Shown piece by piece: positions 7,245-42,340 of a stretch of 64,000 nucleotides of DNA. The DNA lies in contig NC_086102.1 of the NCBI RefSeq assembly GCF_963921235.1, positions 54,312,001-54,376,000 of the forward strand, read 5' to 3'. The stretch is from Mobula hypostoma. Lineage: Eukaryota. How positions within the stretch are numbered: the first letter of the stretch is position 1; the number at the start of each line of letters is the position of its first letter. The notes below the pieces were generated by a model. It ran no database searches. It was not told the DNA's origin and saw nothing but the letters and a program-made list of their open reading frames with translations. Both the position numbers and the translations under genes were made by a program.

Positions 7245-7365
7245 CTTTTATTAGCTTCTTGTGTTCTTATTCCAGTGGAAACACAACATTAAAAAACTAT
7301 AGAAATTGCCAGTGGTCCTAAAATAATCCAAAAATAACGTTCTGTTCTAAATTGTGATGCATGTG
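7245..7365 (-). CDS. Exon 4: stalk and hydrophobic (TM or GPI-signal) exon with in-frame TAA at 7291-7289
   Basis: Strong acceptor tacttctttttttgcttttcag|CA in phase 1. Reads AHASQFRTERYFWIILGPLAISIVF*CCVSTGIRTQEANKR. A possible donor AG|gtaagg lies at 7244 and AATAAA at 7252-7247. Confidence 0.75.
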
Positions 7366-13300: not shown

Positions 13301-16300
13301 TACCACACTGATTTCATGTGGACTAATTTGGTCCATTGCTATCCTTTTGATCTTAATATAATCTGTAGAAGCCCTTGGGATTCTCCTTCACATTGTTTGC
13401 CAGAGCAAGCTAATGCCTTCTTTTAGCCCTCCTGATTTTCCTTTTAAGTGTTCTCTTGCATTCATTATACTCTTCAAGCATCTCATTTGTTCCTTGCTGC
13501 CTATACTTGCTGTGCAAAAACTCTTCTTCTTCTTAACCAGGGCCTCAATATTCTTTGAAACCAAGGTTCCCTAAACCCGTTAGACTTGCCTTTCATTCTT
13601 ACAAGGAACATACAAACTCTGCGCTCTCAGTATTTCACTTTTGAAGGTCCCCCATTTACCAAAGATCCCTTTGCCAGAAAACAACCTAACCCAATCCACA
13701 CTTGCCAGGTCCTTTCTGATGGCATCAAAATTGGCTTTTCTCCATTTAAAATCTCAAACCAAGGGCTAGTCCTATCCTTCTATGTGATTATCTTCAAACT
13801 AATGTAATTATGATCACCAGATCCAAAGTGTTTGCCGATACATATTTCAGTCACCTGCCCTGACTCATTCTCTAATAAGAGATCCAGTACCACACTCTCT
13901 CCAATTGGAATCTCTATAGATTGATTAAGACCATAAAGCCATGAAAGATAGGAACAGAATTAGGCTATTCGGTCCATTGGGTCTGCTCCACCATTCCATC
14001 ATTGCTGATTTATTATCCTTCCCAATCTTGTCCTCCTGCCTTCTACCTGTAAACTTTGACGACCTTACTACTCAAGAACCTATCAATCTCCACTTTAAAT
14101 ATATCAAACGACTTGGCCTCCACAGCCGTCTGTAGCAATGAATTCCACAGATTCACCACCTTCTGGCAAAAGCATTTCCTCCTCATAGTTGTTGTAAAGG
14201 GACATCCCTCTATTTTGAGGCTGTGCCCTCTGGGCCTAGACTCCCGCACAACGGAACATCCACTCGTTCAAAGACTTAAAATATTCAATAGGTTTCAATG
14301 AGGAAGCCCCTCATTCTTCTGAACTCCAGTGAATACTGGCCTAGAGTCATCAAACTCTGCTCATATATTAATTCTTTCATTCCTGGGATCATTTTTGTGA
14401 ATATTTTCTGGACCCTCTCCAATGCCAGCACATCTTTTCTTAGATAAGGGGCCCAAAACTGCACACAATGCTCCAAGTGCAGTCTGACCAATGCCTTATA
14501 AAGCCTTAGCATTACATCCTTGCGTTTATATTGCAGTCCTCCGGAAATGAATACTGACAATGCATTTGCCTTCCTTACCACCGACTCAACTTGCAAGTTA
14601 ATCTTTAGGGAACACTGCATGAGTTCTCCCAAGTCCCTTTGAACCTCTGAATTCTGAATTTGCTCCCCATTTGGAAAATAGTCCACACTTCTATTCCTTC
14701 TACCAAAGTGCACGACTATATTCTTTCCTACACTGTATCAATCCTCCACTTCCTTGCCAATTCTCCTAATCCATCCAAGTCCTTCTGCTGACTCACTGCT
14801 TCCTCAGCAGTACCTATCCCTCCACCTATTTTTGTATCGTCTGCAAACTTAGCCAGCAAAACATCAATTTCAATCTCCAAATCATTGACATATCAAGTGA
14901 AAAGCTATCCCAACACAGACCCCTGTGGAACACTGCTAGTCCCAGGCAGTCAGCACATATAGGCACCCTTTATTCTGACTCTGCCTTCAATCAGTCTTCT
15001 ACCTTTCCTACAATGCCATGGGCTCCTATCTTGTTTAGCAGCCTTGTCAAAGGCCTCCTGAAAATCCAAGTAAACAACATCCACTGACTCTCCTTCGCCT
15101 ATCCTGGCTGTTATTTCCTCAAAGAATCCCAGCAGGTTTGTCAGGGAAGATTTTCCCTTAAGGAAACCATGCTGACATTCACTTATTTTACCATATTCCT
15201 CCAAGTACTCCAGGTAACTCCTTAATAATGGATTCCAACATATTTACAACCACTAATGTGGTGTTAACTGGTCTATAATTTCCTTTTTTATGCCCTCCTC
15301 CCTTCTTAAAGAGTAGAGAGACACTTGTGATTTTCTAGTCCTCTGGAAACATTCTAGAATCTAACCATTCTTGAAAGGTCATTAAAAATGCCACCACAAT
15401 CTCTTCAGGTACCATTTTCAGAACCCTGGGGTGTAGTCTGTCTGGTCAGGCTGTCTTACCTAATTTCAAACGTTTCAGCTTCTCCTCAGTAAGAGCAACC
15501 ATACTGACATCTGCCCTCTGATGCTCTCAAATTGTTGGCGTACTGCTGGTGTTTTCCACAGTGAACAAAATACTTTTTAAGTTCATCTGCAATTTTTTCT
15601 CCCCCATGACTACATCTCAGGAATCTTTTTCCAGCAGTCTGATATTCATTCTTGCCTCTCTTTTACTCTTTACATATGTGAAAAAAATCTTTTGGTATCC
15701 TTTTTTATATTTTTTGGGCAGCTTACCTTAATATATTAACTTTTCTCTCCTTATAGTTGCCTTCAGTTGGTGTTTAAAACCTTCCCAATTCTCTAACTTC
15801 CCACTAAGCTTTGCTGTATTATACACCCTCTCTTTTGCTCTTATACTGTCATCCACTTCCCTTGACAGCCACAGTTGCCTCATCCTCCCTTTAGAATACT
15901 TCTTCTTCTTTGAGATGTATTGATTCTGTGACTTCTGAATTGCTTCCAGAAACTCCACCCATTGCTGTTCTGCTGTCATCTCTGCTAGTGGCACTTTCCA
16001 ATCTGCTTTGGCAAGCTCCTCTCTCATGCCTCTGTAATCCTCTTTACTCCACTGTAATACTGATACATCTGATTTTAACTTCTCACTCTCAAACTGGTAG
16101 TACAGGATTTTTATCTGAGATATGGAGGATTCAAATGTGAGATGTATTTGCTGCAGTTTTGGTAAATTTTCAAATTGTAAATACCATTTTTGTAATTTTA
16201 TGGTTCCATATACACATATCTGCATTTTTAAATTGTATATGTGGCATTTTAATCCCATAATCTTCATTATTAATAAACCACAGTGAATACTTTGTGGGTC

Positions 16301-19300
16301 ATTATTAACCATCATCTGCCTTTAGACAACCTGTCTACCAGAGTCATTGTCAGAGTTGTACAGAATAGAAACAGGCCCTTCAGTCTACCACATGTATTCT
16401 CACCATCATGTCTATTTATAGTCATTCCATTTGCCTGCATGAATTCCATATCTCTCTCTCCCTGGCTCATTTAAGTACCTGTCAAGATGCCTCATATATA
16501 TATATTTCATCACCTCCTCTGACAGCTTATTCCATTTACCAACTATTCTGGGTGTGAAAAATGTGCTCCTCAGATCCCTTTTAAACCTTCTCTTGGTCAC
16601 CTTAAATCTACGCTTCTGATTTTAGTCATTTCCACCACAGGAAACAGACATTGCTATCTATGCTATTTATGCCTCTCATAATTCTACATACCTCTAATCA
16701 TGTCTCCTCCCAGCTTGCTACAGTCTAGGGGAAACAGACCCAGTGTATCCAATTCCTTCTGCTAACTCAAGTTCTCCACTCCAGGCAACATAATTGTGAA
16801 TCTTTTCTGCAGCCTCTGTTTTAATCGTATCTTTCCTGTAGCACGCTGACCAGAACCGCACATAATATTCCAAGTGCAGACTAAGCAAACTTTTGTACAA
16901 CTGACACCTGAAGTGCCAACATCCCTACTCAGTGCCTCAGCCAATGAATCTAAGCATGCCATATGCCTTCTTCACTACCCTGTCTACTTGTATTCTCATC
17001 TTCAGGGAACTATTTCCACCATCTGCACAATCTCTGTGTCCAAGTTAAATTCCATCTGCCATTCCCTTTCTCAGTTGATCTCTATCCTGTTGTCGTTTCA
17101 CCTTCTTCAGTATCAATGACTCCACCATTTTTTTACGCCATCTACAAACTTACTCAATCACGCTACCTACATTCGCATCCAAATCATTATGTTACAAACA
17201 ACAGAGGATCCAGCAATGATCCCTGCAGCACACTACAGATCACAGGCCTCCCATCTGGAAAAGCAACCCTACACTATCACTCTCTGCTTCCTCATCTATT
17301 GAACCTTCTCACTCTGAATCCATGTGTTCTAACCTTCTGTCACAGTCTACCATGTGGAAGACTTTACTATAATGTCCATGCAGAAAACATCTACTGCTGT
17401 GCTCACGTGTCTCTTGGTTACATCTTCAATAAAAAACTATTTAATTTGTGAGATGTGATTCTGCTAATCAGTCATCATCTTTCCAAATGCTAATAAACTC
17501 TTCCTCTGAAAATCCCTTCCAATAACTTTCCCACCACTTATGCAAGACTCACTTGCCTGCAGTTTTCTGAAGTAACCCTGCTGCTCTTCTTAAATAAAGG
17601 CACAATATTAACTATCCTCCCGTGCCACACCTATGGCTGACAAAGATACCAAGATCAGGGTCCTGGTGAGTGGGAAGGAAGCGGGAAACTCAAAGTCTTT
17701 GCAGGTGGGGTTGGAAGATGGAATTGTAGGGAGCTTGGCAAGTATTAACTGATGAGCTAGAGACTAAACCTGTGTGATTTCAGAATTGTCAAATTGTTGA
17801 CTTTTGGAGCACTTCTCTAGGCACGTAATTCTCCCTTGGGTAAATTTCCTTCCATTAACTTCAGTGAAATGAATTTTAGAAACTTTAAAGTATTTTAGAA
17901 GTTTTAAAGTATAACTCCAATAATCCTCAGTTTTGTTTGTTTAAATGATACAGACTGGGATGAATTACTACCTCTGACCTTTTTGCAAATTTACTACAGG
18001 TAATTAATTTGCCCAGGCCTTTGACTGAAATGAAAACTCATTTTCTCCCTCCATATTTATTACCCCATCTGCTAAGTGTTTTCAGTATTGTTCAAAAATC
18101 TAATAATTCATTGATAGAAATGTTGTCCATGTCTTTGTTTCATTTTTCTGCTCATTAATGTATTATACTTACCAGTTACAGTGAGGCAGGTCTTGCCAGA
18201 GCTTGAATCAATATCAGATGTATTAAAGAGACATTGATAACATCCTTCATCTTCAAGCTTTATTCCAGATAGTTCTATTGTGTACACTGACTCATTTGTT
18301 GATATAAAAGAAACTCTTTTATCACGTTTCTCAAATGTATTGAGTTTTACATTAAATTTGATGATATTTTCCTCAGATTCACCTCTTAGCTTTTTCCAGA
18401 TAACCTGTTGAATATTTTCTAATTGTGTTGTACAGCTGAAGTTAACGTTTGCACTTATTACTGCTGTCTTATTCTCTTGAGTCTCTTCATGTGGACTTTT
18501 TGCTGTGAAATGGAAACAGAATATAGTTAAAATTTCCCGTCAAGACCTTGAAGTTTTCAAATTGGTATGAATGATTTTACCACAGTTTGGTAAAATGATT
18601 CTCATCAGCTTTGTTCCACTCCAAAGCCCAAAGCACAAACCCTGGACTTGTACTTCCGTGCTGATTTGAAGGAGCAGCACTGTATTGGAAGTGTACTTTT
18701 CAACTGAATGGGTAAATTGAGACCCTGACTGCTCCTCTGATACAAAGCTCTTTACAATGGACAGGGCAAGTTTTCTCCTGACCCTGGCCAATAGTGATTG
18801 CAAATCATTTATTATTAATAACATTATTAAACATCAATCCTTAAATAGTTGACACCTCAATCTGTAATAAGTTTTCATAGGCAACAACACTTGAACTGGA
18901 AAACTAGAAGAATCTGTTGCAGGACAGCAGCAAAAATACTTTTTTATTTACCTGAATATCATGTCAGAAGATGCAAGACAGCTGATCTTTATCTCAGTTA
19001 TCATATTGGTTTCTATAGCACTGCAAATACCACACCCATTATTTCCTGATTACATGCAAGGGTCAAATATGTACAGTAAAGTCCTTTTGGTACTGCACTT
19101 TACTTTTCCTGCAGGGCTCACACCTGACATTTCTTCTGGATGAAAAAGCACATAACTATGTATTTGGTTCCCAGTCACTGCCCCATTATCTATCTCTGGT
19201 GCTTTTAATAGCAATGCCTTATTTCTGGAGCATCATGAATACAACCTTTTCATGTTTCATAACAAAAGTGCCAGAAATTACTCATCTGAACTCTTGAACT

Positions 19301-22300
19301 CCCATTGTTACTCATTATTTTAAGTCTAAAAGGTAAAGAGCAAAATCTGTGATATTCTTTGTGGGGATAAAACAGCTACAGTTTGGGAAGACATTGTTAG
19401 TGAGCTACCAGGAAACTACATGCATAAAAGTTTATCCCCAGTTGCTACAGGTCATTCATGTTTTTACAGATGTCCGTAAGTTGATTTTGTCCATGATGGA
19501 AAATGAACAACAAAATAAAACTCACTTGGTATCATAACCAATGGTAACCATACCTCCACAGTACTACAAGGAGTGGCATCAAAAGCACACATGACTGATA
19601 AAGAAAGAACAATTTTAAAAAGTGGAGTGAGAAGAAACTAATTCTGCTGTTTGTAAGTATGTATATTGAATTTTTGAATTTGAATTTTGTGAGCATGCCT
19701 GTATGTAGGGGTGTTCATAAGTTGAAAGTTCTTAACCCAGGAATATCCTACACTACTAAATACATTATTACATTAACTATGTGATAGTCTGCCTTGAAAT
19801 CCATTCCAATGATATCAATGGATTACAGCACAGAAACAAGCTTTCCACCCCACCAAGTTTCACTAAGCAGCAAGCATCCATTCACAGTAGTCCCATTTTG
19901 TTCTCCCCTCAACATTCCTGTCATTCATGCAATTTACTGCGGCCAATCTATCAACCTGCACATCTTTGATGTGTGAGTGGAAACCACTGCAGCCAAAGGA
20001 AATCCGTGTGGTCATGGAGAGAATGTCCAAATAACTGAGGTCAGGATTGAAGCCGGGCACTGGAGCTCTGGGGCAACAGCTTTATTAGCGCATATTGTGG
20101 ACAGCACTATTCTGAATCTAGATTATTTAACCCACTGTTTACCTCAGGTCCTCAAATGAAATTTGAATTAACTTCTATTTCATCTTACTAATCCTGCAAT
20201 TTAACAACTGACCACATGATTTCCTTAGCAATACACAAAGTACTCTCATAACTACTGATCCAGGCAGAATACCTGTCAGTGCAACAAGGAAAATAAAATG
20301 GTTTAAGAACATACGATGCTAAGCACATAACTGAGCAACATCCCATTCATGATCCAGTTAAACCCGTGGACTGTAGACTGCTAAATTGCCTGATTGCTTC
20401 TCAGCTGCAAGGTCAGCCTCATGGGAAATAAAACATCTTAATTAATCAACACACCATGAGATATGTGTTTCAAAATGATCCAAATTGAATTTTCAGTAGT
20501 AATAGACAATACCTATTATCGATTAGACATAACTTATTGCTTATTCTTACTAATTAACATCAACTTCAGGTAAGTAAATATCAGTTGTATTTTTAAGTAA
20601 AAAGTAAATATTTTAGTCACTTTTACATGAGATAATGAAATTACAGAACAGACTATCATAGATGATTTTAATTCAATCAATTCTATTTCAAGATAACAAT
20701 TAACAAAAAAAGATTGAGAGTTTTGTTTGAATAGGTTAGTTTGAATGATGCAAGAATTTAAAAAATTCTGGAATCTTGCACGAGTTTGCATTCATGATTA
20801 AATAGTCACATAGGGAATGTGGAAGGAGATAATTTAATGAGCGAAGTGGACTTCGGTGGTTGAAGACATACTTTATTTTTATTTGTACAAGTCTTACCAA
20901 GTACATTCAGGCAGGTCTTCCCAATATTTGATCCAGCTGGGAATGTCGTGAAGAGACACTGATAACATCCTTTATCTTCATATCTCACTCCAGAAAGTAC
21001 AAGGGTGGATTCTTGCAGCTTTGATGTCAAAATAGACACCCTATCCATAAATGGTCCAAATACTTTGGGTCCAATTTTTTCATTGTAGATGGCGATGTTT
21101 TCCTCTGTTTGACCATTTAACTTTTGCCAGGTCACCTGTAGAATATCATTTAAATTTGTTGTACAAGTGAAGGAAAGTCTTTCTCCGAAAACTGCTGTTA
21201 TTTTTTCCTTTGTCTTCACAATCGGACTTTGAGCTGTGAAACAGAAATAAAATAGAATATTGTAAAGAAAACTAATCAACCATTTCACAAATATTTATTC
21301 CCAAAACACTCAAAGGTATGCTAATTATACTGGATATACATATGTCTTGGATGAGAATGCATGTGTCTGATAGCATATTTACAGAAGAGGTAAAAATTTG
21401 TGCCTGCTGAAGGGTCTCGGCCCGAAATGTAAACTGCACTTTTTTCCATTGATGCTGCCTGACCTGTTGAGCTCCTCCAGCATTTTGTGTGTGTTGCAAA
21501 AAATTGTGGAGGTTGTAGATAGCAAAAAAGGTAGCCTATGTGTACAGCGGGACACAGATCAGTCAGAAAGTTAAGCAGAGAAATGGTAAATGGAATGAGC
21601 TAATGCACCTTGGAAAGCAAATCCTTGCAGGATATGTACAGTAAATGGTAAGAACTTTAGGAGTATTGATGCATAGAGGGACCTTTGGGTGCAAGTCTAT
21701 AGCTCACTGAAAATGGTAATCTAGCTGCATAGGAAAACAAGGAAGACATTTTGTCTGCTTGGTTTCATAGGCAGAGATATTGAGTATAAGAGTTATGGTG
21801 TCATGTTATAGCTGTATGAAACATTGGTTAGACCACACTGGAGTGTTGGGTACAGCTCCATTTGCCACACTGGAGGGAGGGTGCTGTAACAATAGAAAGA
21901 GTGCAGAAGAGATTCACCAGATAGTTGCCTGGAATGGTGGGCTACACAGAAATTGAATAGCTGGGTTTATTCTTACTGGAACATACAGTGTGCTAGAAAG
22001 TTTGTGAACCCTGTAGAATTTTCTGTATTTTGGCATAAATATGACCTAAAATGTGATCAGATCTTCACATTAAGTCCTAAAATGAGATAAAGAGAACCCA
22101 ATTAAATAAATGACACAAAATATTATACTTGTTCATTTACTTATTGAGAAAAATGATCTCTACAATTCTTCTTCTAAGGTCCTCTGAAAGTTGTTTTGAT
22201 CACGGCATGGTGCACACAAACAGATCTTTCTTGAGAAGAGCAGACTCTGTCAGTAACCTGACTTGGTGAGCCTTTTTTATAAGGCAGGGCACGTCCACAA

Positions 22301-28300: not shown

Positions 28301-31300
28301 AGCACGCAAACGGAACCCTCAGCCTAAATGGTCATGCTAACCCCAGCGTCCTCCTGTCTAGTCCCATTACCTGCATTTGGTAAGAATCAATGACAAAGGT
28401 TGGTTTCAACTGCATTGTCTCAAGGTTGATAGCTTGCTTCAGGGCAACATTAACTGAGCAGAATTTTCAAGTTGATGTATCACTGGGTTGCCCTTGGACC
28501 AATATTTTGACGCGGTATATCTAATGTGTGTTCATTCAGCATATACACTAATTTTCTTCAGTGAGCAACTGCTGCCCTACCCATCCTATTTTCTTATGGT
28601 CTTTCCTAGGATGGCTCAATTGTGAATCTAATCTTGTGCTGAACTGGGAGCCTGAATGTGACCTACAGCAAACTATAGTGTTTATTGTTCATTTAATTCA
28701 TTGCAGCTGCTTTATATTTTACTACACTGTAAGTTTTAAAACTGATTTCAAATGGATTGACCCTATTGCCGTTGCTGTAATTTTTGATGAACTTTGTATA
28801 ACATCAGAGTATTACAACAGAGTAAGTTTCAACAATCCATTGCTTGCCATATGTACTGGTTTAAACTAATATGGCAGGGGGATGTGAATCAGGAGTATAG
28901 AGCTGACGAGGAGCCTGCAGGTTTACAAGTAGATGACGGATGTAACATGAATGTAAGGAAGGACAAGCCAATGAATGGGGTAAATGCAGACAGAGCAGAG
29001 AGTTAAATTGGACCACAGAGGCAAAATTCAAAAGGCCAAAGAATGCAGGACTGAAGGTGCTATATTTAAATGCGCTTAGCATTTGGAGTAAGGTGGAAGA
29101 ACTTGTGGAGCAATTAGAGATTGGTCAGTATGACGTTGTAGGCATCAATCGTGGCTGACAGAAGGCCATAGTTGGGAGCCTAACATCAATGGATATACTT
29201 TGTAACAAAAGGACAGGCAGGAAGGCAAAGGTGATGGTGTGGTTCTGTTCATAAGAGATGGAATTATATCTTTAGAAAGAGGTGACATCGGGTCAGAGAA
29301 TGTCAAATCTTTGTGGGTGGAATTAAGGAACTGCAAGGGTGAAAAAACCATTATGGGAATCATATATAGGCCTCCAAATAGTAACCAAGATGTGGGGTTG
29401 AGACTGCAGTGGGAGCTGGAAAAGGCATGTAATAAGGGTAATGACACAATTGTAATGGGGGACTTCAATAAGCAAGGGGATTGGGAAAATCAGATTGGTA
29501 TCGGATCACAAGAGAGGGAATTTGTTGAATGCCTACAAGATAGCATTCTAGAGCAGCTTGTGCTTGAGCCTACTCAGGGAAAGGCTTAGATTGGGTGTAG
29601 TATAATAACACCAATCTTATTAGGAAGCTCAATGTAAAGGAACACTTAAGAGCAGTGATAATAATATGATTGAATTCATACTGCAATTTGAGAGGGAGTA
29701 GCATAAGTCACATGTATCAGTATCGCAATGGAATAAGGGGAATTACAGAGGCATGAGTGAGGAGCTTTCCCAGGTGGATGGGAGAAGGATAGGGGTGGGG
29801 ATGATGGTAGAGCAGAGATGGCTGAAGTTTCTGGGAATAGTTCATAAGGCACAGGAGAGATATGTGTCACAGAAGAAGAAAATCTCGAATGGCGGGGGTA
29901 GGCAACCATGGCTGACAAGGGGAATTAAGGACTACATAAAAGCCAAAGAAAGGGCATATAAGGTAGCAAAAGTGAATGGAAAGTTGGATGATTGGGAAGC
30001 TTTTACAATCCACCAAAAGGCAAATAAAGGCTATAAGAAGGGAAAAGATGAAATATGAGGGTAAACTAGACAATAACATACAGCAGGATACCAAAAGTTT
30101 TTTCAGTTATATAAAGAGAAAAAGGAAGATGAATCTTGATATTGGACCACTGGAAAGTGATGCTGATGAGGTAGTAATGGGAGGACAAAGAAATGGCAGA
30201 CGAATTTAATGGGTGCTTTGCACCTGGCTTCACTGTGGAAGACACTAACAGTGTGCCAGAGGTGTGAGAGTGTCAGGGAGCGGGAGTGAGTGCCATTGCT
30301 ATTACAAATGGAAAAGGGCTAGACAAACCCAAAGGTCTTAAGGTGGATAAGTCACCCGGACCAGATGAACTACATCTCAGACTCCTGAGAGAGTCCTGAG
30401 GAGATCATGGGTGTAATGGTTATGATCTTTCAAGAATCAGTTGACTCTAGCATGGTCCCAGAGGACTGGAAGATTGCAAATGTCACTCCACTCTTTGAGA
30501 AGGAAGGAAAGCAAAGGAAAGGAAATTATAGGCCGGTTTGCCTAACCTCATTTCTTGTGAAAGTGTTGGAGTCTATTATTAAGGATGAGGCTTCGGGATA
30601 CTTGGAGACTAATGATAAAATAAGCCAAAGTCAGCAAAGTTTCTGTACAGGGAAATCTTGCCTGACAAATTTGTTAGATTTCTTCGAGGAAGCAGGGTGA
30701 ACAGAGGAGAGGCAGTGGATGTCACTTACTTGGATTTTCAGAAGGCATTTGGTAAAGTGCTACACATGAGGCTACTTAACAAGATAAAATCCTACGATGT
30801 TACAGGAAAGATACTGGCATGGATAGAGGAATGGCTGATAGGCAGGAGGCAGTGAATGGGAATATAGGGGGCTTTTTCTGGTTGGCTGCCAGTGACTAGT
30901 GGTGTTCCTCAGGAGTCAGTATTGCGACCGATACTTTTCACTTTGTTTATCAAGGATTTGGATAACGGAATTGATAGCTTTGTGGCAAAGTTTGAGGATG
31001 ATACAAAGATAGGTGGAGGGGGAGGTAGTTCTGAGGAAACAATGCAATTGCAGAAAGACTTACGACAAATTGGAAGAATGGGCAAAAAAGTGGCAGATGG
31101 ATGACAGTGTTGGGAAATGTACGATAATGCATTTTGGTGAAAGGAACAATAGTGCAGACTAATATCCAAATGGGGAGAAAGTTCAAACTCAAAGGTGCAG
31201 AGGAGTCCTCGTGCAAGACTTCCAGAAGATTAATTTACAGCTTGGGCCTGTGGTAAAGAAGGCAAATGCAATGTTGACATTTATTTCAAGGGGAATAGAA

Positions 31301-34300: not shown

Positions 34301-36794
34301 TGGACTCTGCCTACACTTCTCACTGCCTCAGTATAGAAGCCAGTATAAAGAACAACCCACCAACCTCAGACATTCTCTCTTTTCATTACTCCTATCAGGT
34401 AGAAGATACAAAAGCCTTAAAGCATACACCACTAAGCTCAAGGAAAGCTTCCATCCCACTGTTGGAAAACTATTGAACAGTTCCCTACTATTATAAGAAA
34501 GGCCTTTGACCTCACAATCTACCTTACAACCTTGCATTTTATTATCCAATTGCACATGACTTTCTCTGTAATTGTTACACTTTATTCTGCAATCTGCTGT
34601 GGCGGTATCTCAATGCACTGTTGTCATAAATTGATCCATATGAATGGTGTACAAGACAAGCTTTTCTTTGTACCTTGGTACATTCACCTATTTCATTTTT
34701 GTGATAAGCCTGGTTTCATCTATAAGCTGCAGTTTAAAACTTAAAGATAACAAATGAACATGTAGAACGAGCTGCCAGTGCAAGTGGTGCACGTGAGCTC
34801 GATTTTATTGTTTAAGAGAAGCTTGGATAGGTACATGGATAGTAGGGCTAGCGAGGGCTATGGTCCCAGTGCAGGTTGATGGGAGTAGGAAGCTTAAATG
34901 GTTTCAGCTTGGACAAGATGGGCCAAAGGTCCTCTTTCCGTGTTGTATTTTTCTATGACTCTGTGACTCTACCAAGGATAGCTTTGAAAAATAACACAAA
35001 ACCTAGTCAGGTAGTGTAGGCTTGCGGTTATATTGTTGTTGAATGAGTCATTTGAATGTGAGATTGCAAAGATAACAAAATTTTAGGCAACATTTGCAGT
35101 CAGACCATTGTTTACTCCCAATAGCAGACAAAAAAAAAGTATTTTCAAACATTTCCCATCTGTGAAAATTCTAGTGCTTCCCCATTAAGCCAGTAAGCTT
35201 CTAACTCCTGGACAGGCATTGCAGTTTTGAGGATGGACGACACTTAGTTTTCATTCAGGGTGGGAACACAAAATCTTACTAAGCTTGGCATTTCTCTTCT
35301 AGGCAGTCCTTCAGGGTGCGGGTGGCTTGTTTCTACTCAAATTCTGAGGGTTATGTGGTCTGAGGTGTAATATGGCTTAAGAGGCCATTGTGGGACCTAC
35401 TGATTCTGCTGGAAGGGCTTACTGGGATGGGCGGGTGGGTAGTTTGATATCGATGCTCTCCTTCTGTTATTTTTTACCAGGTTATTGGCTGCTCCTGTCA
35501 AATAACCCTGCTTTCTGAATGGTCCTTCTCAACTAGAAGTGGCCATTGGCCAGAGGTTCCTATAAGTCGTGAATTGTTGCATTTCTTCAAGGAGATGTCC
35601 TTGAGAACACGATTGAATTCCCTCCACTGTGCACCCAGCACTTTCTCCCCATGATAGGTTGGGGTGTCTGTTTCAGGAAGAATGTAGTCATCATGCCAAT
35701 CAGGTAGCCTGTCCAACAGAACTGATGGAATGCATTAGAAATATTTTGCAAAAGTAGTTACTGGTGTTATTCCACCCCTCCCCTTGCTTTGAAGTGGCTG
35801 TTGTAAGCTGTCTTTAGCTTAGAGCGACGCTGGATGGCAGGGCTCGCTGCTGCTTAGTGGAACCTAGCACCAGGTTCGATTTCCTGATCCTCATGGGCTC
35901 TTTCCCTCAGCAAGGCGGCACTGGTTCACTGAAAGCAATGCCCGTCTTCAGAACGTTATAACTCTCGATTTACTGTAAGTATTACACATTTCCCAGGACT
36001 TCACTATCGGAGCGCAGTGTTGGCAGTGGAGCGTTGCAGTTGTTAGTATACGGCTCGTTCACTCACTTTCTTCAGTGAACAACTTAGCAATAATTTGGAA
36101 ATCACAAGTATTACCTGCACATTACAACTTGACTGAAACGGTGGCAACCTTGATTCTGGGACAGAACTTTCCCTATTTGCTCTGTACATTATTCGATTCC
36201 AACAGTAAGCTTGTCTGAGTAGCAGGCAACAAGAAGCTACATATCCAATCTCCCATCTGAACACCGACAATCGGCAAACTAAGAGAAATGCTTATCATAA
36301 TACGTTGCAGAAATGCATATCATTCAGGGTCTTGACCCTAGCCTCTGCAAATGCTTTTCCCTTTCAAATACGCACCTCCCCACAACGAAATTGAGCACCA
36401 GGTATAGAGGGCAGAACAGACTATATTGGCGTACTCCTCTTTAAAGAAACAAATCGGCAAGCCGATGTCGAATACATCAGTTTCAGACATTATTTTCAAT
36501 GCACTTACTATGGTATTTCAGCTCTTTACACTGTTGCATTCTTTTTTAATTAAACTGGTTGCAAAATACAACTCAAACGTGTTGTTTTTTGCATGCCTTT
36601 GTGAGGCTGTATATTACTCTACTACTCTCTTTCCTTTAACATTCCTCCTCCTTTCTACTCACCCTCAGCTGACCCCGATTTCCCAGTTCACTATCCTGTT
36701 AAGCCATTCGGCAGAACATACTGAGCTAAAGAAAACGTTAACGATTCTCACCGTCGGCCAGAGAGACCAGCAGAGCGAGCCCAAAGAGTTTCAT
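7289..36794 (-). CDS. CD200/OX-2-like Ig-superfamily gene, spliced model join(36794-36752, 21233-20898, 18502-18173, 7365-7289); 261 aa: leader-IgV-IgV-hydrophobic C-terminus
   Basis: Four exons of 43+336+330+74 coding nt (783 nt = 261 codons, then TAA) join in frame through GT-AG phase-1 introns: MKLFGLALLVSLAD|AQSPIVK...GKTCLNVL|AKSPHEE...GKTCLTVT|AHASQFRTERYFWIILGPLAISIVF*. Both V domains carry VxWxK, ExGCYxCLF and GKTCL, including the extra Cys pair typical of CD200 V domains. Orthology to CD200 was not tested. Confidence 0.8.
8555..9830 (+). mobile_element. Degenerate CR1 fragments with a PLE-end remnant at about 8790-8900
   Basis: FYKTLVKLHLGPCLQFW and the CR1 3' UTR. Confidence 0.65.
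11530..13900 (-). mobile_element. Cluster of CR1 fragments (mostly minus; a plus 3' end at about 12560-12800)
   Basis: LVRPNLEYCVKFRSP and WRIANVVSLFKKG motifs. Confidence 0.75.
13945..16110 (-). mobile_element. CR1 LINE ORF2 remnant
   Basis: YLDFQEAFDK, RLYKALVRLHLEHCVQFWAPYLRKD, RGHSLKIEG. Confidence 0.88.
16330..17640 (-). mobile_element. Degenerate CR1 fragment
   Basis: LEYYVRFWSACYRKD and KGDLRSTFFT-type motifs. Confidence 0.7.
18173..18502 (-). CDS. Exon 3: CD200-like IgV domain 2 (110 codons), absent from ORF track
   Basis: Acceptor ttctgtttccatttcacag|CA and donor ACTG|gtaagt; no stop codons. AKSPHEETQENKTAVISANVNFSCTTQLENIQQVIWKKLRGESEENIIKFNVKLNTFEKRDKRVSFISTNESVYTIELSGIKLEDEGCYQCLFNTSDIDSSSGKTCLTVT. 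Confidence 0.9.
19890..20100 (-). mobile_element. Degenerate HE1/V-SINE
   Basis: Reverse complement of the same V-SINE core (gtggaaaccactgcagccaaaggaaatccgtgtggtcatggagagaatg). Confidence 0.55.
20898..21233 (-). CDS. Exon 2: CD200-like IgV domain 1 (112 codons)
   Basis: Acceptor tatttctgtttcacag|CT and donor CTTG|gtaaga. Translation includes FTCTT...QVTWQK...DRVSI...LSGVRYEDKGCYQCLFTTFPAGSNIGKTCLNVL. The track ORF 20806..21288 reads through intron at both ends. Confidence 0.92.
21986..22398 (+). mobile_element. Tc1/mariner remnant with a nested Rex-like fragment (about 22200-22365, minus)
   Basis: TA|cagtgtgctagaaagtttgtgaaccc TIR and a degenerate partner ggttcacatactttc. Confidence 0.6.
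22670..23480 (-). mobile_element. CR1 5' region (ORF1 esterase-like segment)
   Basis: CYLQGSRIKDISDRVHSILKGEGGQPQVVYIDTIDIGRKR resembles the CR1 ORF1 SGNH esterase domain. Confidence 0.7.
24005..24613 (+). mobile_element. Rex1/Babar-type LINE 3' fragment
   Basis: NFYSCTVESILTGCITVWYG; tail aataaacctgattctgattctga. Confidence 0.8.
25343..25585 (+). mobile_element. HE1/V-SINE-type tRNA SINE
   Basis: ccacggtggcgtagcagttag...gagttcaatcc...gggttttctccggtgctcccatttcctcccacagtccaaa core, typical of V-SINEs. Confidence 0.75.
25685..26880. mobile_element. Older Penelope-like 3' fragments in inverted arrangement (minus about 25685-26440, plus about 26470-26880)
   Basis: GIY-YIG tail (LQLDGINIDFFNF) and pyrimidine-rich 3' region similar to 58612-61566. 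Confidence 0.7.
28855..31895 (+). mobile_element. Long CR1 LINE (ORF2 endonuclease and RT, multiply frameshifted)
   Basis: WVELRN..IYRPPNS, MGDFN, WKIANVTPLF.K, YLDFQKAF, TSGVPQ.SVL.P, CR1-type 3' end. Confidence 0.9.
34225..34745 (+). mobile_element. Degenerate Rex1/Babar-type 3' fragment
   Basis: HLSQHITETSFPSMDS.YTSHC, similar to the copy at 2823-3495. Confidence 0.6.
35290..35730 (-). mobile_element. RTE LINE 3' fragment
   Basis: GAQWREFNRVLKDISLKKCN resembles the RTE C-terminal GGQ..RFKD.LK.SLKKCN motif. Confidence 0.55.
36752..36794 (-). CDS. Exon 1: signal peptide MKLFGLALLVSLAD
   Basis: ATG at 36794-36792 is the first in-frame ATG after an upstream TAG. Hydrophobic leader, then donor G|GTGAGA in phase 1. 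Splicing to exon 2 gives an A-D-A|Q signal-peptidase site. Lies in a CpG-enriched region. Confidence 0.8.
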
Positions 36795-39759: not shown

Positions 39760-42340
39760 TCTATAAGACCATAAGATACAGGAGCAGAATTAGGCCATTT
39801 GGCCCATTGAGTCCACCCTTCTATCCCATCATGGCTGACGCATTCCTCCTCTCAGCCCCATTCTTCTTTCTTCTGGATGCATCCTTCATGCTCTAAGCTA
39901 TCAAGAATCTATCAACCTCTGTCTTAAATATAGACATTTAAGACTTGACCTCTACAGCTGCCCACGGCAATAAATTCCACAGATTCACCACTATTTTGCT
40001 AAATAATTTCCTATTCATCTCTGTTCTAAAAGGACACTCCTCTATTCTGAGGCTGTGTCCTTTGGTCCTAGACTCTCCTACCATAGTAAACATCCTCTCC
40101 ACATCCACTCTATCAAGGCCTTTCACCATTCAAAAGGTTTCAATTAGGTCACCCCTAATTCTTCTGAATTCTAGTGAATACAGGCCCAAAACTACCAAAC
40201 ACTCTTCATAAGACACAGCATACCATTTCTAAGATAAGGGGACTAAAACTGCTCACAATACTCCAAGTGAGGCCTCACCAGTACTTTATAAACCCTGAAC
40301 ATTACATTCCTGCTTTTATATTCTAGTCCTCTTCAAATGAAATCTAACTCCTTCCTCACCACAGACTCACCCAGCAAATTAACCTTTAGGGAATCCTGCA
40401 CAAAGACTCCAAAGTCCCCTTGCACCTCAGAGTTTTGAATTTTCTCTCCAATTAGAAAATAGTCTACCCTTTTATTTCTTCTACCAAAGTGCATGACTGT
40501 GCACTTCCTGACACTGTATTTCATTGCCCCTTCTCCTAATCTGTCTAAATCCTTCTGTAGCCTCTTTACTTCTTCAAAACTACCTACTCCACCACGTATC
40601 TTCATATTGTCTGCAAACTTTGCAACAAAGTCATCAATTCCATCATCCAAGTCATTGATATATAACATAAAAAGAAACAGTCCCAACACAGACCCCTCTG
40701 GAACACCACTAGTCACAAGCAGCCAACCAGAAGAGGCTCCCTTTATTCCCACTCTTTGTTTCCAGCCAATCAACCACTGCTTTAGCCATGCTGATATCTT
40801 TCCTGTAATGCCATTGGCTCTTAACTTGTGAAGCAGCCTCATGTATGACAGCTTGTCAAAAGCCTTCAGAAAATCGAAGTACACAACATGAACTGATTCT
40901 CCTTTGTCTATTCTGCTTGTTATTTCTTTAAATAATTCTAACATATTTGTCAGGCAAGGTTTTCCCTTTTGGAAATCATCCCGACTATGGCCTATTTTAT
41001 CATGTGCTACCAAGTACCCCAAAACCACATTCTTAACAATTGACTCCAACATCTTCCCAATCACTGAGGTCAGACCAATTGGCCTATAATGTCTTTTCTT
41101 CTGCCCCTCTCTCTTGTTGAAGAGTGGAATGACATTACAATTTTTCAGTCTTCTGGAACCATTCCAGAATCTAGTGATTCCTGAAAGATTATTACTAACG
41201 CCTCCACAATTTCTTCAGCCACCTCTTCCTGAACATTGGGGTGTACACCATCTGGTCCAAGTGACTTATCTCCTTCAGACTTTTCAGTTTCCCAAGAACT
41301 TTCTCCCTAGTAATGGCAACTTCACACACTTCCGACTCCTGACACTCTTGAACTTCCACCATACTGCTAGTGTCTTCCAAAGTGAAGACTGATACCCCGC
41401 TGAGGGTAGCAGACACTAACAGAATCAAGAAACTCATTCGTAAGGCCAGTGATGTTGTGGGGATGGAACTGGACTCTCTCACGGTGGTGTCTGAAAAGAG
41501 GATGCTGTCTAAGTTGCATGCCATCTTGGACAATGTCTCCCATCCACTACATAATGTACTGGGTGGGCACAGGAGTACATTCAGCCAGAGACTCATTCCA
41601 CCGAGATGCAACACAGAGTGTCATAGGAAGTCATTCCTGCCTGTGGCTATCAAACTTTACAACTGCTCCCTTGGAGGGTCAGACACCCTGAGCCAATAGG
41701 CTGGTCCTGGATTTATTTCATAATTTACTGGCATAATTTACATATTACTATTTAACTATTTATGGTTTTATTACTATTTATTATTTATGGTGCAACTGTA
41801 ACGAAAACCAATTTCCCCCGGGATCAATAAAGTATGACTATGACTAAATACTTATTCAGTTCATCAGCCATTTCCTTGTCCCCCATTATTACCTCTCCAG
41901 CATTGTTTTTCAGTGCCTGATGTCCACTCTTGCCCCTCTTTTACACTTAATGTATCTGAAGATATTTTTGGTATCCTCTTTAATATTACTGGCTAGATTT
42001 CTTTCATATTCCATCTTTTCCTTCTTAATGACTTTCAATAGTTACTTTCTGTTGGTTGTTAAAAACTTCCTAATCCTCTTCCCACTAATTTTTGCTCTTT
42101 TACATGCCTTCTCTTTGGCTCTTATGTTGGCTTTGACATCTTTTGTTAGCCATAGTCATGTCATCTTGCCTTTAGATTACTTCTTCCTCTTTGGAATGTA
42201 TATATCCTGTACCTTACAAATTGCTTTCAGAAATTCCAGCCATTGTTGCTCTGCTGTCATCCCTGCCACTGTTCTTTTCCAATCAATTTTGGACAACTCC
42301 TCTCTCATGCCTCTGTAATTCCCTTTACTCCTTTGCAATA
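39760..42340 (-). mobile_element. CR1 LINE (RT region), interrupted by a Rex/Babar insertion
   Basis: ORF 40333..41064: YFDFLKAFDK, VTSGVPEGSVLG, KFADNMK; tail (taagaccataaga) at the low-coordinate end. Confidence 0.9.
41395..41846 (+). mobile_element. Rex1/Babar-type 3' fragment nested in CR1
   Basis: LHAILDNVSHPLHN...RKSFLPVAIKLYN; (tatgac)n tail. CR1 resumes on both sides. Confidence 0.8.

Follow-up and report, generated by a model that had tools for sequence, protein, structure and literature searches.

Two questions are raised by a 64,000-nucleotide stretch of the genome of the ray Mobula hypostoma (the window), in which the membrane-anchor exon of a CD200-like gene is cut by an in-frame stop codon: whether this stop is a genuine feature of the gene, and how a protein truncated in this way would be held at the cell surface.

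The gene and its anchor exon

The 261-residue gene model of a preliminary description of this DNA is the same as a public annotation, RefSeq XP_062905965.1 (P0124, named nectin-1-like isoform X1 of Mobula hypostoma). This protein maps to the window with no mismatches over four exons of the minus strand. The features of the gene are listed here together with the evidence for them.

36753..36794, minus strand: exon 1, signal peptide MKLFGLALLVSLAD... (P0124 mapping; signal peptide recognised by inspection)
20899..21234, minus strand: first V-set Ig exon, residues 15-126 (P0124 mapping, V-set match)
18174..18503, minus strand: second V-set Ig exon, residues 127-236 (P0124 mapping, V-set match)
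7245..7365, minus strand: anchor exon, 121 nt, internal to the transcript (acceptor AG at 7367-7366, donor GT at 7244-7243)
7292..7365, minus strand: coding part of the anchor exon, with the candidate omega region A237-H-A239, the spacer SQFRTER and the tail YFWIILGPLAISIVF (residues 247-261)
7289..7291, minus strand: TAA stop, abutting the T6 run at 7291-7296, whose last T is the first base of the stop
7245..7288, minus strand: rest of the exon behind the stop, now 3'UTR, a relic of the second half of the ancestral transmembrane (TM) segment and of the basic tail

The ER signal peptide, likewise judged by inspection, reads MKLFGLALLVSLADA|QSP; it contains a hydrophobic core, and A-x-A precedes the mature end. 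Residues 237-261 of P0124 map exactly to the anchor exon (7366-7292), which starts at its 5' end at 7365 with CACATGCA... and is translated as (A)HASQFRTERYFWIILGPLAISIVF, followed by TAA. The minus-strand reading agrees with the preliminary description in that 15 hydrophobic residues run into the stop without a cytoplasmic tail, that the TAA (7291-7289) stands directly behind six T (7296-7291), and that a seventh T would restore a longer frame: one base back, which is equivalent to T7, the exon reads L-MLCFHWNKNTRS and then two successive stops. The frame had also been described as open after the stop. It is indeed open, as CCVSTGIRTQEANK, over the 44 nt from the stop to the donor (AAAAG|GTAAGG), but this has no coding meaning, and the post-stop length varies between species.

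Genomic DNA of Pristis (L001), Rhinoraja (L002) and Leucoraja (L003) was aligned with the window. In addition, two Leucoraja mRNA contigs (L004 and L005) join the orthologous anchor exon to the second V exon (V2) upstream and to a 3' exon downstream, and the splice uses the same conserved donor, AAAAG|GTAAGGAAA; it is in skate that use of this donor and of the 3' exon is shown. The skate 3' exon (L004 1206-1691) was not found in the window or its 6-kb flanks, and its counterpart probably lies beyond the window start.

Pfam V-set matched two stretches of the protein (E 8.5e-25), so that both domains are of the V-set. Among sequences in the PDB, the V domains matched nectin-1 (2e-16), CD226 (4e-12) and mouse CD200 (4bfi_B, 2.6e-11). 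The RefSeq names for the orthologues are inconsistent (nectin-1-like, CD226-like, OX-2-like), and the C-terminal 37 residues retrieved generic Ig clusters only in the ESM Atlas, with scores below 0.7. The V-V layout was seen in all batoids and galeomorph sharks, and V-C2 products in the squalomorph sharks Pristiophorus (P0006) and Heptranchias (P0013) and in Callorhinchus (P0020). With V-C2 isoforms of squalomorph sharks as queries, the proteins retrieved were almost exclusively tetrapod OX-2/CD200, at 35-44% identity; for the Pristiophorus product, nearly all matches were OX-2 or OX-2-like proteins of birds, turtles and marsupials (E about 1e-37). A C2 exon was not found when the shark and chimaera C2 regions were searched by tblastn against the window and the three other batoid genomic sequences, including the interval between V2 and the anchor exon. 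Like tetrapod CD200 (OX-2), the window gene has an N-terminal V-set domain of the nectin/CD200 type, and the short basic tail of its shark orthologues resembles that of CD200. It differs from CD200 in having a V-V instead of a V-C2 ectodomain and in V domains that score better with nectin-1 than with mouse CD200. The single-pass TM segment and short tail of CD200 are present in the shark orthologues and absent in batoids. On these comparisons, the label CD200-like used in the preliminary description is fair, but the gene departs from the CD200 family in its V-V layout and, in rays, also in the TM segment and tail.

Several variant models exist. Hemitrygon akajei isoform X2 (P0127, 241 aa, predicted) lacks the anchor exon, with V2 joined directly to the 3' exon (...CLTVI-GLQII-stop); in the same phase, the skate 3' exon begins GLDII (L004:1206-1230). 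P0127 may be regarded as a candidate soluble form. Amblyraja isoform X1 (P0129, 328 aa) uses an alternative donor downstream of the V2 exon (L003:24265-24303), by which 12 residues, GKPKPSISRNQK, are inserted between V2 and the anchor exon, giving a longer stalk before the candidate omega site. Skate models and transcripts of 316 aa begin 56 residues upstream of the MKLF... signal peptide, at MTVIPAEWAEISS... (L004:1-431, L003:5789-6218). Their upstream ATG may be an artefact of a 5'UTR open reading frame; if it is truly used, the signal peptide would be internal. A second Mobula hypostoma model, named OX-2-like (P0007, XP_062906908-11, 140 aa), was not found within the window. It shares 89% identity with residues 108-240 of P0124, ends ...CLTVTADCSILYVGKLM without the anchor exon, and probably represents a partial paralogue from another part of the genome. 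Long open reverse-transcriptase/LINE-like stretches (for example 14288-14737, 15731-16321 and 40336-41214 on the minus strand, 29206-30697 on the plus strand) fill the gene's introns and flanks; they are ordinary retroelement debris.

The stop codon in batoids and its origin

Batoid orthologues were gathered by a protein search with the first V exon and subsequent cluster look-ups. The sample comprises Myliobatiformes (Mobula hypostoma, M. birostris, Hemitrygon akajei and Hypanus sabinus), Rhinopristiformes (Pristis pectinata), Torpediniformes (Narcine bancroftii) and Rajiformes (Rhinoraja longicauda, Leucoraja erinacea and Amblyraja radiata). The protein models of all nine species, from four orders, terminate at the same Phe; their C-termini read ...FWIILGPLAISI[IV]F, ...GLLAILIVF, ...GLLAITIFF or ...GLLAIPTVF. 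At the DNA level, TAA occupies the identical alignment column in all four batoid genomes (Mobula, Pristis, Rhinoraja and Leucoraja). A stop column common to four genomes and to the models of nine species is a feature far beyond chance. The codons at the site in Pristis are GTA TTT TAA. The T-run is interrupted there, and a homopolymer miscount therefore cannot have made the stop in this species. The Leucoraja RNA-seq contigs (Logan; L004 and L005 from runs SRR13269331 and SRR13269330) read GTT TTT TAA, so that the T count in these transcripts is six, as in the Mobula window. Both contigs continue for 39 nt past the stop and then leave the genome sequence exactly at the conserved donor. The same protein cluster holds seven distinct transcript-derived 316-aa proteins.

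Selection on the gene was estimated by the Nei-Gojobori method (NG86) among the four batoids with DNA, with counts that are small but consistent. The first V domain gave dN/dS values of 0.14-0.60 and the second 0.29-0.52; in the anchor exon, the values were 0.23-0.41 over the coding part and 0.16-0.46 over the hydrophobic tail. These ratios indicate that the truncated gene is functional and that the remnant of the anchor is under purifying selection.

The position of the stop behind T6, where one extra T gives a normal TM segment with a tail, is what would be expected of an artefact or a defect, and the preliminary description had named a frameshifted allele and an assembly error as alternatives. 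Both are refuted by the data. An assembly homopolymer error is excluded by the independent assemblies of nine species, by Pristis with no homopolymer at the site and by the skate RNA-seq contigs, and a private frameshift allele by the same stop in nine batoid species. A pseudogene is excluded by a dN/dS that stays under 1 in the tail as well as in both V domains, and by transcription in skate. We regard the chance that the stop reflects any such fault as negligible. The truncation is also not a variant peculiar to one genome but is fixed across batoids after the shark-batoid split. That the anchor exon of batoids carries a conserved truncation is almost certain, and the RefSeq models ending ...ISIVF are correct and not cut by a sequencing error.

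The orthologous exon was then compared with its counterpart in sharks (Heterodontus, Carcharodon, Cetorhinus, two Scyliorhinus species, Stegostoma, Mustelus and Chiloscyllium). All eight shark orthologues, which are of the V-V layout, keep a full TM segment of 18-22 uncharged residues and a basic tail of 10-17 residues, as in the C-terminus of Heterodontus (AHTSPFRLQQYAWIIIVLVAILIVIFIFSFNWYKKRRYQLRAYSFGN), whereas all nine batoids are truncated at the same Phe. Ray and shark sequences match in the 0 frame up to ...IV, and from there onward in the -1 frame. In this frame, Pristis reads L-IFCFNWNKKRRCKK, in which IFCFNWNKKRR stands against IFSFNWYKKRR of Heterodontus; Mobula has L-MLCFHWNKNTRS and the skates have L-RF[HY][SF]HWNKRK. 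When the Heterodontus C-terminus was searched by tblastn against Pristis, two HSPs in different frames and with a 1-base overlap were obtained, the first covering AHASRF...ILIV and the second ILIFCFNWNKKRRCKKR. The switch to the -1 frame was seen in all four batoid DNAs. The lengths agree with it: the Mobula exon of 121 nt is 1 nt under 2 + 3x40, and Heterodontus has 40 residues after the split Ala and before ...AYSFGN. Read in phase 0, the skate 3' exon yields GWTLFGA-stop, which resembles the ...AYSFGN end of Heterodontus. When seven C-termini of sharks and chimaera were used as tblastn queries against the window and the three other batoid genomic sequences, no second, intact TM exon was found.

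The shark-like sequence in the -1 frame behind the stop of the rays implies that a net loss of 1 nt in the batoid stem truncated the TM segment. On the simplest history, with protein sequences on the shark side of the comparison, this net loss of a single nucleotide would have occurred in the batoid stem lineage, after the shark-batoid split and before the skates diverged from the other batoids. Estimates for the shark-batoid split are 306 or 261 Ma, according to which constraint set is used (PMC3692497).

Anchoring of the truncated protein

A GPI signal begins with a small omega residue (A/C/D/G/N/S) and a small residue at omega+2, which are followed by a hydrophilic spacer and, at the C-terminus, by a hydrophobic tail; in PredGPI and big-PI, the spacer covers omega+3 to omega+9 and the tail starts at omega+10 (PMC2571997, PMC9098846). 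The C-termini were matched to these published rules by eye. The preliminary description had proposed that A-H-A, SQFRTER and the 15 hydrophobic residues fit such a signal, and they do so position by position, with A237 as omega, H238, A239 as omega+2, the spacer SQFRTER at 240-246 and the tail at 247-261. The residues at omega to omega+2 are A-[HR]-A in eight batoid species and D-G-S in Narcine. The spacers are polar throughout, with SRFRSQN in Pristis, HLRSQHN in Narcine and SQFTTPY in the skates Leucoraja and Amblyraja. Ala counts among the accepted omega residues, yet it is outside the most frequent experimentally verified residues of PredGPI. The hydrophobic tails of batoids measure 13-15 residues and run to the C-terminus; compared with the quoted 15-20, they fall at the lower limit or under it.

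The same positions differ between rays and sharks. At omega+2, rays have Ala or Ser, whereas all eight sharks have Thr, Lys or Ile. Every ray tail contains Gly where sharks have Val, and several also carry Pro; the eight shark TM segments contain neither Gly nor Pro. In a rough estimate, the summed hydrophobicity of the equivalent 14-15 residues was far weaker in most rays than in sharks. In the genome allele of Leucoraja, an Arg stands three residues from the end (...AVPRVF). GPI signals perform best at marginal hydrophobicity. The Thr-to-Ala change at omega+2, the Val-to-Gly changes and the weaker hydrophobicity in rays point the same way, toward a GPI signal.

The preliminary claim that a TM exon was truncated into a GPI-type signal is thus borne out at the sequence level by the full TM segment of sharks, by the homologous -1 frame of rays and by the fit of the remaining tail to the published features. 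We consider it probable that the loss of 1 nt in batoids turned the TM exon into a GPI signal and that the protein is GPI-anchored. The following course of events is proposed, of which the steps up to the truncation are shown by the sequences. In sharks, the last-but-one exon specifies a juxtamembrane stretch, a TM helix of 18-22 residues and the first part of a short basic tail. The batoid ancestor lost a net 1 nt near the middle of the TM segment, which led into a new frame that hits TAA, and the protein stops after about 15 hydrophobic residues with no cytoplasmic residues. After translocation into the ER, the GPI transamidase would cut behind Ala237 and add the GPI lipid. By this lipid, and with no protein anchor, the two-domain ectodomain would be held on the outer leaflet, from which phospholipases could release it. 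The mRNA is expected to escape nonsense-mediated decay because the stop lies 38-44 nt upstream of the last junction, within the usual limit of 50-55 nt; the assembled skate transcripts are consistent with this.

Alternatively, the 15-residue hydrophobic end could remain uncleaved and hold a type I protein in the bilayer as a short, tail-less membrane anchor. The purifying selection by which the hydrophobic tail is kept would suit such an anchor, and in Pristis the tail matches the first 15 residues of a shark TM segment in hydrophobicity. However, a short helix without a basic border on the cytosolic side is a poor stop-transfer anchor, and with 14-15 residues, Gly and Pro among them and no cytosolic basic flank, the ray tails would be poor stop-transfer anchors at the plasma membrane. 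A short anchor would also leave the conserved small residues at omega and omega+2 and the correctly spaced polar spacer unexplained. The CEACAM literature bears on both sides: horse CEACAMs with stop-containing TM exons are predicted to be transmembrane and not GPI-linked, whereas the shortened helices of primate CEACAMs are improperly fixed in the membrane and act as GPI signals (PMC5856374). On balance, we consider a short membrane anchor unlikely.

Rather less likely still is that the tail fails as an anchor altogether and that most of the ectodomain is secreted, to act as a decoy or soluble ligand. Soluble forms are plausible for this gene, since the predicted Hemitrygon isoform P0127 skips the anchor exon. 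Secretion needs no hydrophobic tail, yet the tail has been kept at the low dN/dS given above since the batoid radiation, and uncleaved hydrophobic C-termini are usually retained and degraded, not secreted.

The probable GPI anchoring of the batoid protein has a precedent in primates. The GPI-signal exons of primate CEACAM5-8 derive from a CEACAM1-like TM exon (Naghibalhossaini and Stanners 2004, as summarised in PMC2832619 and PMC5856374), and a shortened CEACAM helix without a charged cytoplasmic border serves as the GPI signal (PMC5856374). Features of such a conversion were found here as well: in relatives, the homologous exon encodes a full TM segment and a tail, and a truncating mutation lies inside the TM exon, behind whose stop the former coding sequence can still be read. 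In both systems, the TM exon of an IgSF surface protein was shortened by a small mutation, the hydrophobic remnant lacks a charged cytoplasmic border, and one or more old tail exons lie untranslated downstream. By this analogy, the batoid truncation would parallel the primate CEACAM conversions. The ray event is much older than those of the CEACAMs, falling before the crown batoids and after the shark-batoid split at 261-306 Ma (PMC3692497). It concerns a gene of another family (CD200/nectin-like V-V) in another clade, and seems to have happened once, in a single-copy gene, unlike the repeated events in the expanding CEACAM family. Furthermore, GPI anchoring is proven for the CEACAMs and read from sequence in the ray case.

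In CD58/LFA-3, NCAM-120 and Fc-gamma-RIIIB versus IIIA, one Ig ectodomain is likewise carried on a lipid or a peptide anchor, and small C-terminal differences decide which. These cases involve alternative splicing or paralogues within one species, in contrast to the ray switch, which is a fixed lineage difference with TM forms in sharks and truncated forms in batoids. If the reading as a GPI signal is true, all living rays and skates carry a GPI-anchored CD200/nectin-like V-V ligand, convergent with the primate CEACAMs. This would be an apparently clean, old and clade-wide case in which one lost nucleotide switches an immune-type Ig ligand from a peptide anchor to a probable lipid anchor, with sharks preserving the state before the switch and the lost coding sequence still readable past the stop. 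The CEACAM paradigm, so far documented in primates and possibly swine, would then also apply to cartilaginous fish and to a further family, the CD200/nectin-like proteins. The pair of shark and ray proteins would provide a natural test of the effects of GPI anchoring on raft location, on shedding and on the loss of any function of the tail. In the literature searched, nothing relevant was found on GPI-linked CD200 or on CD200 of cartilaginous fish, nor any description of the batoid truncation. The truncated form is already present in RefSeq models; as far as the searches reach, the probable conversion is apparently undescribed.

The sequence behind the stop

The 41-47 nt from the stop to the end of the exon are 71-83% conserved among the four batoids, compared with 75-82% for the coding part, and the block CACTGGAATAAGA is invariant in all four. 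Within the ancestral frame of this stretch, the differences between rays are almost all nonsynonymous, with pN > pS, and its lengths including the stop (47, 46, 41 and 42 nt) differ by non-multiples of three. The stretch behind the stop has ceased to be translated and is retained as 3'UTR and splice context. A product of 0-frame read-through (CCVSTGIRTQEANK...) was rejected, as the post-stop lengths are out of register and the sequence is not protein-like.

A further possibility is recoding, in which a -1 ribosomal or transcriptional slip on the U6 run before UAA restores the old frame. One mRNA would then give both a GPI form and a TM form, and peptides of the -1 frame such as ...IVFLMLCFHWNK would be produced. 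The sequence GUU UUU UAA of Mobula and the skates lets tRNA-Phe re-pair one base back with the stop in the A site; the invariant block behind the stop, and the fact that only the exon and its near flanks can be aligned with skates, would also agree with a retained coding function. However, the excess of nonsynonymous differences and the unequal lengths of the stretch argue against it. Pristis, with GTA TTT TAA, has a poor slip site, the restored TM segment of skates would have an Arg in its middle (LRF[HY]...), and all assembled skate transcripts have six T. Much of the retention is explained by slow neutral decay, as Mobula and Pristis introns are alike over kilobases. We therefore regard recoding as very improbable.

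For the pair Mobula and Pristis, whole introns can be aligned over kilobases with an identity of 73-79%, and this likeness means that slow neutral decay explains the retention of the post-stop stretch between these two. Slow rates reported for chondrichthyans are in agreement with slow decay (PMC3692497). Versus the skates, the alignable sequence consists of the exons and near flanks only, and some constraint on the post-stop stretch is therefore likely. As the preferred cause, we suggest a purine-rich splicing enhancer together with the donor context, because the exon must still be spliced. A spacing constraint on the distance of 38-44 nt between the stop and the junction would also be plausible.

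A canonical AATAAA hexamer was observed at 7247-7252 on the minus strand, at the extreme end of the Mobula anchor exon and directly before the donor. It is missing in Pristis, and the skates carry AGTAAA at this place. In Mobula, the hexamer could permit polyadenylation without the last splice.
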